A DNA stretch of 45,450 nucleotides from Orbicella franksi (GCA_964199315.1 OZ116705.1:30832551-30878000); one strand, 5' to 3'. Shown: positions 1,615 through 11,400, counted from the stretch's first letter. Notes: generated from the sequence alone by a model not told the origin. Made by a program: numbers and translations.

Positions 1615-3783
1615 TTAACAGAACGATGCACATGCCCTTTATTAAAAGCGATCTGTTTATATGTAACGCAAAGACAAAAGGAGATAACGCATATAATGGT
1701 ATAAAATGTTTCCGCGTATAGTTTTGACGGTTAGATTGCAGAATGCCCGGCCACTACATATCTAAGTTAAATGAACTGCTCAGGCAGTCCCGCAGTCGAT
1801 CATGCTCTAATGCGTTACCTGTTGGTACAGATAAGTTGGTAAGATAACAATTATTTCACTTACATGAAGTGGCACCCCAATGTCAGGCCATTTAAGCGAC
1901 AAAGAAGGCGGCTCAAGACTGTTCCATACCACAACAACTTTATTAAGGTATTGTAACCCGACAAGACGCTTAATGGTTTCCATAAGCACCAGTTCTCTCT
2001 TGTACGTCAAAATGACAATAGTGAACTGTTCCACTGGGTAATTACCACCCAAAGCCTTGTTAAACTCTGCTCCTGCTCCGCCCATTCCATCCCCGATGAG
2101 TTCGAATCCTTTGCTGGAATTCTTGAATGGCGCTGAAGAAGGTAAAACAGGAGTAAACGGTGTGCTTGGAAACATTCTGAAAGAACCTGGAGGAAAATTC
2201 CACACATTGTAGGCATCTACAACAGTTGATGTTAAATTTCGAAAGAAAGTTGGAGATTCTAGCGCAAGGCTGCTTTTGGCATCTGGGTCTGGAGAGCTTG
2301 TAACAGGGGGCTTGGAATCACCGAACACTGATGGCGTCGGAGAAGCAGACACATGATGGGCAGGAATTGACAAGCGTGTTCTCATAGTAGCTAGCACAGT
2401 TTTCAAAATAACATCAGTAGTTGAAAGGTATGTCTCCCAAAGGAATCTGCCCTGTCGACGCAAGTCAAGAATATCTTCAGTTGTAATTGTTCTGAGTAAC
2501 ACGTTCAATTCAGGGAGCCGAGCTTGTGATAGAATGATTGCAGCTTTCCTCCAATCAATCACATCATTAAATGGAAGCATAACTTTGCTTGATAATATCA
2601 CTGGGATAGCTCCAGATTGTAACGCCTCAAGCAGCCGGATGTGACAACTGTCCCAACTGGAGCTGGCACCGTTTGATCTTACTATTAAGGTAAAAGTTGA
2701 TTGTCTAAGAACCTTTGTTCTGTTGTCGTGGCTTGCCCATAACAACCATTCACTAGTTCCCTTTAAATATTCCAATTTTGATAGATAAAGCTCAATTAAG
2801 AAGTCTCTAGCCTCTCTGGAAATATCGTGAAGTTGATCGCGTAGAATGGCCATTGTTTCTGTAAGATGATCAGCATGTTCTGCTTGAAAACTCAGCAAAT
2901 ATTTCCTTCTTGCTGGTAGCTGTAAAGCAGCAAGATGCCACACGTCTCCCTTGAGAGGTCCAATCGATGGTGGTACCACAATGTCAAAACCATGGCGATA
3001 AATTTTGTTACTTGAAAATGTTGATTGAGCAATCAAGGCAAAGCCTGTATTGATGGTAAGGGACAAAATGCTAGTAACATGTCTTCTGTCTGTTTTTAGG
3101 TGAAGAAACAAATGATTTTTGCCATTTCCTTTTCAGTAGGGCAATGAGTGTAAATCCGTTTCGAGGTCGCTCTTACTTTTCCGATGACGAGCAGGTTCGA
3201 CCGACCCTACAATCACTATGTACAAACAGGCTTTCTCTGGTTCCGCTGTGTAATAAGGGCTTCTTTTCAGCAACTGGAAAATTTCCGTGACGTTGGATTC
3301 TGAAGTAAGATTACCAAACGAACGCTTGTAGACGAACACTGGAAAACCTGAACTGAAAGAACATCTCGAAAAATCAAAGCAATCGAATAGTTGACAGTTT
3401 GAGGAAGCTCTCTGGTCTGGGAGTGAGCTATGATTGTCATATTCAGGTGCCGCATTGAGTTTCTCAGGCAGTTTCAAGTATGGTAGTTGTGGACAGTCGT
3501 TAGCTCGTACTTTGGCAAGTTTAATAAGCTCGAGCTCCCTTTCTGCCCGAATCAAAGCAGTTTTCAATTCACCAAGTCTGTCTTCTAAGGAAACTGTGTT
3601 GTCAATGGCCCCGTCTTGCTTGGTCCAAGAATGCAAATTAATTTGAGTGTTTCCTAAAGGAGCTCTCTCTTTTGCCAAATAATATTGAGTTATTAGCGTT
3701 ATCACAAGTGTATATAGCAAGAGAAAAGTGAACAGTCGCCCAAACGAAGAGTCTTTCAGTTTGTGCATTAACACATGCATCAT
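283..3783 (-). pseudogene. EXTL3: EXTL3 paralog (exostosin-like 3) with a premature stop; partial, remaining exons lie left of the window
   Basis: Exon 1 3783-1864, exon 2 1225-1098 (128 bp), exon 3 427-283 (145 bp). Exon 2 and 3 sizes, phases and GT/AG sites match the plus copy. In-frame TGA at 3135-3133 where the plus copy has TGG (9272-9274); the frame continues KGNGKNHL after it. GT64 DxD (SIDDD) retained. Pseudogene status rests on this one base. Confidence 0.8.
1440..1614 (+). mobile_element. LINE (L2/CR1-like) 3' tail ending in AATAAA + (ATT)n
   Basis: TTGTAAAGCAC...CGCTATATAAATAAAG followed by about 10 ATT units (1584-1614), in intron 1 of the minus EXTL3 copy. The family and the 5' boundary are inferred and approximate. 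Confidence 0.5.
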
Positions 3784-3903
3784 ACAATGAAGTTATTTCT
3801 TCTTGTTCTGCTGATGGAAAGAAGGAACATGAAGTATCACTGATAAATCGCTTGTCAAGATTGTTGCAATCAAGCCAGTTTGAGAGTAATTTTCACGAGA
3901 AAT

Positions 3904-3921
3904 TTAATCTTCCAGAAGCAT
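3904..3921 (-). promoter_or_regulatory. Short upstream ORF (MLLED*) in the leader of the minus EXTL3 copy
   Basis: ATG CTT CTG GAA GAT TAA, about 120 nt before the main ATG, within a 27-nt block that is 25/27 identical to 8335-8361. Confidence 0.5.
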
Positions 3922-8310: not shown

Positions 8311-8355
8311 ATGCCTTCAGCGATGTATTCGGGGAATATGTTTCCGGAAGATTAA
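8311..8355 (+). promoter_or_regulatory. Upstream ORF (MPSAMYSGNMFPED*) in the EXTL3 leader
   Basis: In-frame ATGs at 8311, 8323 and 8338, stop at 8353-8355. The last ATG..TAA segment is homologous to the uORF at 3904-3921. Confidence 0.5.
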
Positions 8356-8482
8356 ATTTCTGTCGAAATTTTGGATCGATTACAGCGAGTTTGACAAACA
8401 AGTAATCAATGGTTCTTCATGTTTCTTGTGGCTGTCGGCAGGACATTTTATTTCTTGTTAGCAGAAGAATTAACTTGGAGTG

Positions 8483-11400
8483 ATGCATATATTGATGTAC
8501 AAACTCAAAGACTCGTCGCTCGGGCGACTGGTCGCATTTCTCCTGGTATTTGCACTTGTGGTACCGCTAATAACTCATTACTATTTAGCAAAAGAAACAG
8601 TTCCTTCAGAGAGAAGTCGAATTAATTTTCAATCAAGGACCAAGTTAGACAGACCCGTTGACAAAGCGGATTCTTTACTTGATAGAATCGATGAATTGAA
8701 ATACGAAATTGAAGAACAGGAGAGAATCAAATTGTCATTATCTAATGAACTAAGACAGCTTGAGGGAAGGAAGAACGGGCTTTTAAAAGTGATTTCTAAT
8801 TTTTCTAGAAAAGCGGAGAGCGCAAGAACTCAAGCTGAACATTACCATGCTGATGTGATTCGAGCACAAAGGGAACTGGAGCTTATTAAACTTGCCAAAA
8901 TACGAGCTAATGACTGTCCACAGCTACCTCATTTAAAACTGCCGCAAAAACTTAATGTGGAATCAGAGGATGACATTAGCCCGGTCCCAGACCAAAGAAT
9001 TTCATCAAACTGCCAACTTAACAATTGCTTTGATTTTTCAAGATGTGCTTTCAATTCTGGATTTCCAGTCTTTGTCTATGAGCACCCTTTGGGTTATTTT
9101 ACTTCAGACTCTAGAGCCATAGATATTTTGCAGTTGTTGAAAAACACTCCATATTACACAGCTAAACCAGAGAAAGCCTGTTTGTACATAGTGATTATTG
9201 GATCAACAGAACCTACTCATCATCCGAAAAGTAAGAGCGAACTTGAAACAGATTTACACTCACTGCCTTACTGGAAAGGAAATGGAAAAAATCACTTGCT
9301 TTTACACCTAAAAACAGACAGAAGACATTTTACTAGTATTTTATCCCTTAACATAAATACAGGCTTTGCCTTGGTTGCTCAATCAACATTTTTTAAAGAC
9401 AATACTTATCGCCATGGCTTTGACACTGTGTTACCACCATTGATTGGACCCCTCAAGGGAGACGTGTGGCATCTTGCTGCTTTACAGCTACCAGCAAGAA
9501 GGAAATATTTGCTGAGTTTTCAAGCGGAACATGCTGATCATCTTACTGAAACGATGGCCATTCTACGTGATCAACTTAACGATATATCCAGAGAGGCTAG
9601 AGACTTCTTAATTGAACTTTATCTATCAAAATTGGAATATTTAAAGGGAACTAGTGAATGGTTGTTATGGGCAAGCCCTGAAAACAGAACAAAGGTTCTT
9701 AGACAATCAACTTTTACCTTAATAGTAGGATCAAACAGTGCCAGCTCCAGTTGGGACAGTTGTCATATCCGGCTGCTTGAGGCATTACAATCTGGAGCTA
9801 TCCCAGTGATATTATCAAGCAAAGCCATTCTTCCTTTTAATGATGTGATTGATTGGAGGAAAGCTGCAATCATTCTATCACAAGCTCGGCTCCCTGAATT
9901 GAACGTGTTACTCAGAACAATTACAACTGAGGATATTCTTGACTTGCGTCGACAGGGCAGATTCCTTTGGGAGACATACCTTTCAACTACTGATGTTATT
10001 TTGAAAACTGTGCTGGCCACTTTAAGAACCCGCTTGTCAATTCCTGCTCATCATGTGTCTGCCTCTCCAACACCATCAGTCTTCAGTGATTCCAAGCCCC
10101 CTGTTACAAGCTCTCCAGACCCAGATGCCATAATCAGCCTTGCGTTAGAATCTCCAACTTTCTTTCGAAATTTAACATCAACTGTTGTAGATGCCTACAA
10201 TGTGTGGAATTTTCCTCCAGGTTCTTTCAGAATGTTTCCAAGCACACCGTTTACTCCTGTTTTACCTTCTTCAGCGCCATTCAAGAATTCCAGCAAAGGA
10301 TTCGAACTCATCGGGGATGGAATGGGCGGAGCAGGAGCAGAGTTTAACAAGGCTTTGGGTGGTAATTACCCAGTAGAACAATTCACTATTGTCATTTTGA
10401 CGTACGAGAGAGAACTAGTGCTTATAGAAGCCATTCAGCGTCTTGTTGGGTTACCGTACCTTAACAAAGTCATCGTTGTGTGGAATAGTCCAGAGCCACC
10501 TTCTTTGTCTCTTAGATGGCCTGACATTGGGGTGCCAGTTCATGTAAGTTCTGTCAATAATGTTATCTGAACCAGGCAATGAGATATTGCTATAAAGGTG
10601 ATGACAGACTAGATATGACTCTCACAAAAGTGTGATTGTTTGGACCTTTATGGCATTGCTCTAACTACATGTAGTCATGGATGTCATTTAATCATCCCAT
10701 TAGATTTCTACCAATGTTTACTTTTTCATATTGCTTGTTTTCTGTTTTCAACAGGTCGTGAAAGTAGCTAAGAACAGTTTGAACAACCGTTTTATTCCAT
10801 ACGACGTCATTGAGACTGATGCTATTTTTTCCATTGATGATGATGTAGAAATGCGACATGATGAAATACTCCTGGGTTTCAGGTTTGTGTAACATATTTG
10901 CTTCAAACAACTGCTCATGTGCACATTGCACAGAGTGAAGAGAATGTAACTTGCTTTCTCCATAATCAACAGAATTTGTTAAAATTTTCTCTTATTCAGA
11001 GTTTGGCGAGAAGCAAGAGATCGTATCGTGGGATTTCCTGCAAGGTTTCATGCTTGGGATTCACAGAATAAACAATGGCTTTACAGTTCAGAGCATACCT
11101 GTGAACTTTCCATGGTCCTTACTGGTGCTGCCTTCTACCATAAGGTGAGAGTGAGGTATCAGCAGCTAATATCTCCTTACAGGAGTGATACATTGCCATG
11201 TAGACTGGTGAGGAGAATATATTATCACATAAACAGCTTGGGAAAAAAAGTTAAGTTAAAAGCCAAATTCTCCTTCGGAAAATTGTAAAAATGTATAAAA
11301 ACAGTAATGAAATGTGAAGGTGAATTAATCAACATGACACGAGAGTGGGACAAAGAAAAATTCTGAGTCCCCGACAGGAGTCAAACCCATGACCTCCCGA

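Follow-up and report, generated by a model that had tools for sequence, protein, structure and literature searches.

The window analysed here, the whole stretch of DNA under study, comprises 45,450 nt of the Orbicella franksi assembly (GCA_964199315.1 OZ116705.1:30832551-30878000) and is free of N; coordinates are counted from its first letter. It carries two EXTL3 paralogues arranged head-to-head, copy A on the plus strand and copy B on the minus strand. EXTL3 is the GlcNAc-transferase that initiates heparan sulfate chains. Exon 1 of copy A encodes, in this order, a membrane anchor, a coiled-coil stem, a GT47-like domain (residues 192-479), a linker and GT64 residues 1-54, and the complete copy A has 890 aa. 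Exons 2 and 3 of both copies were placed by tblastn, with the full-length coral protein P0010 for copy A, and by AG/GT splice sites. Exons 4 and 5 of copy B are outside the window, about 2-2.6 kb upstream of its first letter, and are given in the coordinates of L007. The features are as follows:

8483-10543, plus strand: copy A exon 1, 687 codons, open frame, GT donor site at 10544
8702-8848, plus strand: 49 extra stem codons of copy A (residues 74-122), coiled-coil stem
9442-10403, plus strand: homogenised tract in copy A, residues 320-641 (distal GT47-like domain, linker, first GT64 residues)
10146-10374, plus strand: perfect 229-bp block, identical to 2261-2033
10755-10882, plus strand: copy A exon 2, DDD motif of GT64
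11000-11144, plus strand: copy A exon 3
12564-12692, plus strand: copy A exon 4, second homogenised patch
13340-13549, plus strand: copy A exon 5, C-terminal tail and stop codon
3781-8482, no strand: spacer between the start codons, 4.7 kb
1864-3780, minus strand: copy B exon 1, 639 codons, open frame interrupted by a single TGA
3133-3135, minus strand: in-frame TGA of copy B, codon 216
2004-2965, minus strand: homogenised tract in copy B, residues 272-593
1098-1225, minus strand: copy B exon 2, DDD motif retained
283-427, minus strand: copy B exon 3
Outside the window, L007 8002-7874: copy B exon 4
Outside the window, L007 7649-7440: copy B exon 5

The TGA of copy B (3135-3133), the 49-codon gap, the near-identity of exon 4 and exons 4 and 5 of copy B were not part of an earlier, sequence-only reading of this DNA. 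Upstream of both start codons, about 150 bp are still alignable (70%). The head-to-head layout is present in another coral too, with a spacer of 7.8 kb.

PF03016 and PF09258 were found in exon 1 of copy A, in the part of copy B downstream of the TGA, in P0009 (an intact B orthologue) and in the full-length P0010; exons 2-5 of A and B could be aligned to the remainder of GT64. The best solved-structure match of copy A was human EXTL3 (7au2, E 2.6e-130, residues 71-686, spanning the coiled coil up to the beginning of GT64), while the matches to EXT1 and EXT2 (E-34 and E-32) covered the GT47 part only, and the named database matches were exostosin-like 3 or exostosin-3. By sequence, both copies belong to the EXTL3 bi-domain exostosins, the predicted activity of which is GlcNAc transfer to the linker tetrasaccharide. 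Copy A resembles human EXTL3 (PDB 7au2/7aua, 8og1/8og4) in its GT47-like plus GT64 architecture and has the DDD motif, Cys793, Cys915 and five basic tail residues in common with it, whereas copy B differs by the absence of 49 stem residues and by G907, Q914 and E917; the linker of vertebrate EXTL3 is longer (919 aa vs 890 in copy A).

The genome search returned only two EXTL3 copies, no second copy was found within 10 kb in two outgroup corals, and B-type proteins occurred in only five database clusters, all of which fits the earlier view that EXTL3 is normally single-copy in animals. Single-copy coral and anemone EXTL3 genes (e.g., P0010, P0012, P0003, P0006 and Exaiptasia P0031) have the same five-exon structure with a huge exon 1, and the identity of copy A to P0012 is 79% for the whole protein and 89-94% for exons 2-5; unlike here, a B-type partner was not seen within 10 kb in their genomes, nor did the database contain a B-type protein from them. 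No mention of an EXTL3 duplication in corals was found in the literature searched.

The two copies are related by one ungapped inverted repeat (1858-3430 against 8977-10549, 1573 nt, 91% identity), the paired coordinates of which sum to 12407. Within it, 9442-10403 (+) and 2965-2004 (-) differ at 36 of 962 nt (96.3% identity), 26 of these mismatches being at third codon positions, while the 5' flank has 83 mismatches in 465 nt (82% identity) and the 3' flank 21 in 146 (86%). Third-position mismatches numbered 26/321 in the tract vs 93/317 outside it (Fisher p 3e-12). The sequence-only reading had reported this ungapped 962-nt pairing with the same constant sum, and both the repeat search and the mismatch count bore it out. 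Its further figures were reproduced as well: about 11 differing residues in about 320 (309/320 identical on recount), the 229-bp stretch between 10146-10374 and 2261-2033 (0 mismatches), 42/73 identical residues at the N-terminus, about 80% at the start of GT64 (37/46 on recount) and 36/43 in exon 2, and introns that do not align between the copies. Homology ends 6 bp into intron 1.

The 229-bp identical run spans 74 consecutive sites that are variable among species. In a Sawyer-type permutation, corresponding to the GENECONV analysis that had been proposed, a run of this length was reached in 0 of 20,000 column permutations (maxima 127 for all sites and 47 for polymorphic sites), a significant result, and the identity of the tract is far beyond chance. 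Mismatches were unevenly distributed within the tract (p 0.0017), and the 229-bp block is the youngest conversion patch.

Synonymous divergence (dS) between copies A and B fell from 0.51 in the 5' flank to 0.116 in the tract and rose again to 0.50 in the 3' flank, and the same pattern was obtained in a second species pair on a long-read contig (L008/L016), with 0.69, 0.14 and 0.49, respectively. Orthologue dS against the second coral was flat along the gene (0.20-0.32 in all segments), and third-position differences between orthologues inside vs outside the tract were 14.0% vs 16.6% and 15.0% vs 13.9%. The uniform dS along the gene that would have spoken against conversion was thus not found.

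DNA trees of the flanks recovered an A clade and a B clade with supports of 100/98 and 100/100, and the AU test rejected a grouping of the two window copies (A_win+B_win) there (p 5e-63). In the DNA tree of the tract, copies clustered by lineage and B monophyly was rejected (AU p 1.8e-5), and six derived states of the window lineage are common to A and B. The 29-taxon protein trees were concordant with the DNA trees, so that the grouping expected from the per-segment trees with related corals (paralogue clades in the flanks, species clades in the tract) was observed. Segment trees and AU tests agree, and the duplication therefore predates several coral lineages; independent duplication in each species was ruled out by the flank trees and the common 49-codon deletion. 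These sequence comparisons show that the duplication is older than the species splits and that the tract was homogenised afterwards in at least two lineages, by more than one event, each lineage having homogenised the same segment independently. As to sampling, both copies lie on a single long-read contig in one other species only; the remaining B-type sequences were taken from metagenome contigs assembled from short reads, among which L011 is chimeric (B-5'/A-3'). L011 (P0007) was dropped as a B orthologue because its intron 1 and exons 2-3 are A-type.

Informative sites in the quartet of two species and two copies were classed as orthology-type (O) or concerted-type (C). Along the gene they occurred as 86 O sites, followed by 29 C sites with one O and one x, followed by 13 O sites, placing the tract in the two-species comparison at 9358 to 10393. 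The 3' switch falls between 10393 and 10406 and coincides with the Pfam GT64 start (residue 634), where the sequence-only reading had described the similarity as fading, and the 3' boundary lies at this position in both lineages examined.

Exon 4 is a second homogenised patch, not recognised earlier; here A and B (L007 8002-7874) differ at 5 of 129 nt and the 96% identity is limited to the exon plus a few bases. Exon 4 dS was 0.18-0.19 between the copies vs 0.57-0.87 in exons 2+3 and 5, the orthologue dS was 0.27-0.29, and no O sites were found in exon 4. Against such a patch, only 129 bp between unalignable introns are available, which is short for homology-dependent repair, and the signal is based on few sites (p 0.002). 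Repair templated by cDNA, considered for exon-limited patches, is not favoured, as exons 2, 3 and 5 are unhomogenised and the exon 1 tract stops 140 bp short of the splice site.

The reading that best accounts for these data is an inverted duplication followed by repeated interlocus gene conversion between A and B, to which we assign a probability of about 0.9. The dS profile, trees, AU tests and permutation all came out as predicted by the earlier proposal of an old duplication with recent ectopic conversion, and its suggestion that conversion was repeated is in line with the uneven mismatches in the tract, the independent homogenisation in the second lineage and the exon 4 patch. In this history, the whole five-exon EXTL3 would have been duplicated once, in inverted orientation, in the ancestor of a stony coral group. 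Copy A would have remained canonical, while copy B would have undergone early loss of 49 stem residues and changes in GT64 and the substrate-selecting C-terminal tail before coming under purifying selection. Non-reciprocal homologous repair between the inverted arms, presumably of double-strand breaks, would then have overwritten, more than once, a stretch of about 1 kb in exon 1 as well as exon 4 (129 bp), which together encode the distal part of the GT47-like domain, the linker and one conserved strand of GT64, so that the converted segments would evolve in concert within species and the rest of the gene would retain its paralogue identity. Since the tract sequence evolves at the slow protein rate of A, we infer that the direction was mainly A-to-B. 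The common 3' boundary at GT64 is taken to reflect selection against longer conversions or a homology block to them: conversions into the diverged catalytic domain of B would be either removed by selection, which would then act at the tract boundary, or blocked by the drop in homology. A GC-biased signature is typical of conversion, although not obligatory. Here it is missing, a point against conversion, since tract GC3 was not raised (0.33-0.36 in duplicate-bearing species vs 0.30-0.34 in outgroups and 0.33-0.40 in flanks), and GC-biased conversion was ruled out.

Outside the converted segments, copy B has diverged. The 49 stem codons corresponding to copy A residues 74-122 are absent from all B-type copies, its GT64 domain has many amino-acid changes, and the B protein evolves faster than A. 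Both copies in two species retain the DDD motif, Cys793 and Cys915 (residue numbers follow the 919-aa vertebrate EXTL3 proteins). All five basic residues of the substrate-selecting exosite (K905, R907, K912, K914 and K917) are present, with the Cys915 equivalent, in the exon 5 tail of copy A, and copy B does not retain the set, with R907G and K917E in both species, K914Q here and R914 in L008. Mutation of this basic exosite reduces or nearly abolishes priming, and Cys793/Cys915 form the intermolecular disulfide of EXTL3 (PMC10570366). Owing to the altered exosite, copy B is best described as an EXTL3-derived paralogue that is probably not functionally equivalent to EXTL3.

In the assembly, codon 216 of copy B is TGA (W216*), and Trp is present at this position in copy A and every orthologue; contigs L009/L010, from a 98.4% identical lineage, read TGG. 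The TGA haplotype was recovered with 4/4 sampled 31-mers of an 81-bp stretch in X1-X4, representing three samples and two species labels, one of them possibly the source of the assembly. Judging from the assembly and these four 31-mers in three samples, W216* is probably a real allele, and in that case a functional gene would be tied by conversion to a partner that is null or decaying. Searches for exact matches to the truncated B products of 216 aa and 215 aa returned no record, which is uninformative on the allele. The terminal branch of window B carries 5 synonymous and 6 non-synonymous changes, the stop included (ratio about 0.36, too few changes to interpret).

This stop codon also bears on whether copy B is simply a pseudogene across the whole clade, the apparent maintenance of its tract being due only to overwriting from A. 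Apart from the TGA and the faster evolution of the B protein, such a reading is favoured by a repeat element of 657 bp that is inserted, with an 11-bp target duplication, in B exon 2 of the L008 coral. However, the two disruptions differ and are lineage-specific and therefore are late events, B has kept its five exons and every splice site in two species, five further B-type sequences have an uninterrupted exon 1, and residues specific to B, among them G907 and E917, are conserved across species. Between B orthologues, dN/dS was 0.16-0.19 for exons 2, 3 and 5, which are unconverted, and 0.5 for the N-terminal flank, pointing to a GT64 domain that is diverged yet still under selection. Clade-wide decay of copy B is therefore unlikely. 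The sole support for transcription of B came from B-specific exon 1 words in RNA-run contigs of a sibling lineage; the database held no spliced full-length B-type protein and likewise no full-length A-type transcript of this clade was on record, which is uninformative on expression.

It is conceivable, though doubtful, that copy B is a coral-clade EXTL3 whose stem is shortened and whose acceptor exosite has been re-tuned (G907, E917), and that it primes heparan sulfate on other core proteins. If so, the GT47-like scaffold, linker and exon 4 would tolerate conversion as a shared dimer body, disulfide-stapled A/B heterodimers would be possible, selection would fix the boundary at the GT64 edge, and B would be in the course of being lost in the window's species via a segregating nonsense allele.

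Inverted repeats of such size and identity can undergo inversion, and crossing-over between the arms might flip 5.5-6.5 kb as an invertible cassette, swapping 5' halves and promoters to give alternative pairs of N-terminus and GT64, with the homogenised tract as by-product or substrate. In L011, a 5' part of B type is followed by the tract, intron 1 and exons 2 and 3 of A type, and this B-5'/A-3' joint is the expected product of an inversion. However, L011 is a 3.3-kb short-read metagenome scaffold that switches where the copies have identical sequence, which makes an assembly chimera the simpler reading. Moreover, both long-read assemblies show one arrangement, O sites flank the tract and occur in exons 2, 3 and 5, the two copies have separate start codons and N-termini, and there is no hint of programmed switching in an animal germ line. 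The chance of a cassette is accordingly slim.

Even less probable is an assembly artefact in which collapsed or cross-polished arms overstate the identity of the tract. Inverted repeats of 1.6 kb are a structure where polishing may mix copies, and short-read assemblers do fail here, L009 and L010 ending in A's tract and L011 being chimeric. However, two megahit contigs from other samples carry 33/36 of the copy-specific letters in the B tract, contrary to a collapsed consensus, and 12/14 letters of A's partial tract. The long-read contig of another coral has a like low-divergence block with an identical 3' boundary. Logan contigs from three samples showed no variant in the perfect block, one of them covering 2006-2261 exactly and at the highest local depth; these contigs are short and bubble-popped, and mixed A/B letters in the tract are uninformative on real mosaics. 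The absence of any conversion, with stronger purifying selection or a lower mutation rate in the tract, may be dismissed: the tract is indeed a conserved scaffold with protein divergence from outgroups below that of the N-terminal flank, but the orthologue control refutes this explanation, as paralogue synonymous divergence falls four-fold in the tract and orthologue divergence does not, and constraint cannot yield species-specific states common to both copies (29 C sites) or trees grouping copies by species.

Classic interlocus conversion is known from the primate gamma-globin genes, RHD/RHCE, opsin arrays and the arms of Y-chromosome palindromes. The coral locus is alike in its old duplicates, its sharply bounded low-dS segment with grouping by species vs by gene, its patchy sub-tracts of differing age and its boundaries at functionally diverged parts. 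It differs in the gene family and host clade (stony corals), which are new, in the independent homogenisation of the same segment in at least two lineages with the same 3' boundary, in the lack of a GC3 rise, and in one partner with a nonsense mutation in this genome. The EXTL3 case is thus a new example of a well-known process, a clean and ordinary gene conversion, and to our knowledge few cases have been documented in corals. As short-read assemblies break or turn chimeric at the tract, EXTL3 orthology and SNP calls in these corals will mislead unless flanks distinguish the copies. As a compact and well-bounded instance of cnidarian concerted evolution, the locus is useful for measuring how long conversion tracts are and how conversion interacts with selection in corals. 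Copy B, in which the catalytic motif is retained, offers a naturally occurring variant of the exosite on which the choice between heparan and chondroitin sulfate depends.

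The two EXTL3 copies, A on the forward and B on the reverse strand, were modelled exon by exon from a full-length coral EXTL3 protein (P0010) together with splice sites, and a common five-exon layout was obtained.

Exons of copies A and B (coral protein P0010 and splice sites) and the in-frame stop codon of copy B
8483-10543 (+): copy A exon 1
10755-10882 (+): copy A exon 2
11000-11144 (+): copy A exon 3
12564-12692 (+): copy A exon 4
13340-13549 (+): copy A exon 5
3780-1864 (-): copy B exon 1
3135-3133 (-): in-frame TGA at copy B codon 216, Trp at this codon everywhere else
1225-1098 (-): copy B exon 2
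427-283 (-): copy B exon 3
8002-7874 and 7649-7440 of L007, the sequence upstream of the window start: last two exons of copy B, about 2.0-2.6 kb upstream of the window

The product of copy A is intact (890 aa), and in copy B every splice site and the frame are intact apart from the TGA, while 49 codons of the coiled-coil stem (A 8702-8848) are missing. Exostosin_GT47 and Glyco_transf_64 were detected in both copies by Pfam, and the best solved-structure match by far is human EXTL3; copy A is a regular EXTL3. Only these two copies and one distant EXT homologue were found in the 497-Mb coral assembly to which the window belongs. Intron 3 of copy A holds a MITE-like 111-nt inverted repeat (11304-11414/11591-11701, 94% complementary, arms 176 nt apart), and contig depth in the introns of copy B (492-612, 734-975 and 1460-1580) reaches about 190,000, which points to high-copy repeats.

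A repeat search of the window, which contains no N, returned a single ungapped inverted repeat of 1573 nt at 91% identity (1858-3430 vs 8977-10549); the paired coordinates sum to 12407, as the sequence-only reading had proposed. Within the tract (9442-10403 against 2965-2004) the arms differ at 36 of 962 nt, and 26 of these differences fall on third codon positions; the remainder of the repeat differs at 83 of 465 nt 5' of the tract and at 21 of 146 nt 3' of it. Direct counts and translations reproduced the remaining figures of that reading, namely the 229 bp without mismatch (10146-10374 vs 2261-2033) and protein identities, which are 309/320 residues for the tract, 42/73 for the N-terminal stretch, 37/46 where GT64 begins and 36/43 for exon 2; the introns indeed do not align, homology ending 6 bp into intron 1 and exons alone aligning elsewhere. 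The tract corresponds to A residues 320-641, which run from the distal half of the GT47-like domain through the linker into the beginning of GT64.

Relatives were sought by a protein search; in the run table, related samples are labelled "coral metagenome". Many corals have A-type or single-copy EXTL3, and five clusters are B-type (P0007, P0009, P0011, P0017 and P0023), and in all B-type sequences the 49 stem residues are missing and the N-terminal part has residues specific to B. In another coral, a long-read metagenome contig of 115 kb (L008/L016) carries A and B head-to-head with a 7.8-kb spacer, and contigs from two further samples (L009/L010) match the window at 98.4% identity across 8.8 kb. 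In the outgroups (L014 and L015), no second EXTL3 copy was found within 10 kb.

The locus is a case of interlocus gene conversion between inverted duplicates. Between copies A and B of the window, Nei-Gojobori dS is 0.51 in the 5' flank, 0.116 in the tract and 0.50 in the 3' flank, so the uniform dS that would have spoken against conversion was not observed, and the corresponding values in the other coral are 0.69, 0.14 and 0.49. Orthologue dS (A-A and B-B) is 0.20-0.32 in each segment, and across species the tract gives about 0.23 for every pairing regardless of copy. Third-position mismatches between A and B amount to 8% in the tract and 29% outside (p 3e-12), and no such difference was found in the orthologue controls. 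Along the four sequences, informative sites run as 86 of orthology pattern (O-type), then 29 of concerted pattern (C-type), then 13 O-type; the C-type run spans 9358-10393, including one O and one x site, and O-type resumes at 10406. In maximum-likelihood trees of the flanks, the A clade and the B clade are fully supported and the AU test rejects grouping window A with window B (p 5e-63), while in the tract the copies cluster by lineage and B monophyly is rejected (p 1.8e-5); protein trees of 29 taxa give the same picture.

The duplication is older than these coral species, and homogenisation in both lineages post-dates their split and involved more than one event. The sequence-only reading had called the conversion possibly repeated, which agrees with this timing and with the uneven distribution of the 36 tract mismatches (p 0.0017). 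A 229-bp identical run was reached in 0 of 20,000 permutations, and both copies share six substitutions that arose in the window lineage. The 3' boundary is identical in both lineages (10393-10406), in line with the earlier claim that conversion fades at the GT64 boundary. In the other coral, low divergence begins at about 9383 vs 9442 in the window pair, and the longest identical run is 70 nt. At tract site 9599 (copy A coordinate), both window copies read the base A and both L009/L010 copies read G (Arg to Gly), reflecting either very recent conversion in one lineage or a parallel change.

An invertible cassette between the arms, as an added process, has a low probability. One hint comes from L011 (the P0007 cluster), a 3253-bp scaffold in which the first 744 bp at the 5' end are B-type and joined to an A-type tract, intron 1 and exons 2-3; however, it is a short-read metagenome scaffold, the switch falls where the two copies do not differ, and the two long-read assemblies agree in their arrangement. 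L011 may be a chimera made by the assembler at the homogenised tract, or else a haplotype produced by crossover or inversion. That a collapsed or cross-polished consensus explains the tract identity is very unlikely, since copy B of L009/L010 has the window-B letter at 33 of 36 tract differences (at the other three only window B has changed), the incomplete A of L010 has the A letter at 12 of 14, the pattern recurs in the second coral on a long-read contig, and the perfect block shows no variant in Logan assembled-read contigs of three samples. Constraint alone was refuted by the orthologue controls; the flank trees, together with the deletion that B-type copies have in common, refute separate duplications per species.

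Exon 4 is a second homogenised patch, based on few sites. It has 5 mismatches in 129 nt between A and B, against identities of 86%, 79% and 73% in exons 2, 3 and 5, and contains no O-type sites, compared with 12, 16 and 37 in those exons. Its dS is 0.18-0.19 between copies vs 0.27-0.29 between orthologues (third-position p 0.002), and comparison with outgroups shows that it is not mutationally cold.

Against outgroups, dN of exons 2, 3 and 5 is 0.15-0.22 for B and 0.03 for A, with B showing about 5-7 times the protein divergence of A, while dN/dS between B orthologues is 0.16-0.19 in these exons, against about 0.5 for the N-terminal flank. These rates follow the pattern of an early burst and later constraint, which indicates that B has a function of its own as a paralogue and is not a pseudogene throughout the clade. 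In the numbering of 919-aa vertebrate EXTL3 proteins, B retains the DDD motif, Cys793 and Cys915, the 793-915 disulfide being the dimer staple of human EXTL3 (PMC10570366). Basic tail residues of the human enzyme form an exosite selecting acidic core-protein substrates, where pair mutants prime less and the all-five mutant shows almost no priming (PMC10570366). Copy A retains five of five; in B, position 907 is G and position 917 is E in both species, and the window's B has Q at 914, from which we infer that acceptor selection would be altered. Since B lacks the full basic exosite, the most fitting description of it is a paralogue derived from EXTL3, and it offers a natural exosite variant.

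Where window B reads TGA, copy B of L009/L010 reads TGG. The 81-bp stretch bearing the TGA is covered by only four sampled words, all four being present in sequencing runs X1-X4 (three samples, two studies and two species labels, one possibly the source sample) and none in a further run that shares the label and contains the wider stretch. Because sampled words must overlap variant sites, the TGA allele is likely to be real and may be polymorphic. Of the changes private to window B on its terminal branch, 5 are synonymous and 6 non-synonymous. In L008, exon 2 of B is interrupted by a 657-bp insertion (12391-13047) flanked by an 11-bp target duplication; it belongs to a repeat family with a unit of about 400 bp, of which the window's genome has at least 40 copies (82-87% identity), and part of the insertion folds back on itself perfectly over 283 nt, with a loop of 4 nt. 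With the TGA in the window lineage and this insertion in L008, B seems dispensable enough for independent hits in two lineages. In B exon 1 (3078-3300), each of three DNA runs has a Logan contig of 222-223 bp that differs from the window at 10 positions; it has about half of the summed depth of the stretch (45-70), and may be a divergent second haplotype common to the three samples.

Interlocus gene conversion is a well-known process and the same process is seen here, the gene family and host being newly added; no report of such conversion in this family and host was found in the literature searched. The case is clean, with tracts replicated across lineages and bounded by domain, and in practice the tract can mislead both assembly and orthology calling.

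Elsewhere in the window, GC skew at 25001-27000 is strongly positive (0.19-0.31) with an AT skew of 0.24, and no Pfam match was found for two ORFs of about 220 aa there. An uninterrupted 1632-aa ORF at 16835-21733 (-), with Pao retrotransposon peptidase, DUF1759/DUF1758, reverse transcriptase and integrase domains, is a copy of a BEL/Pao-type LTR retrotransposon.
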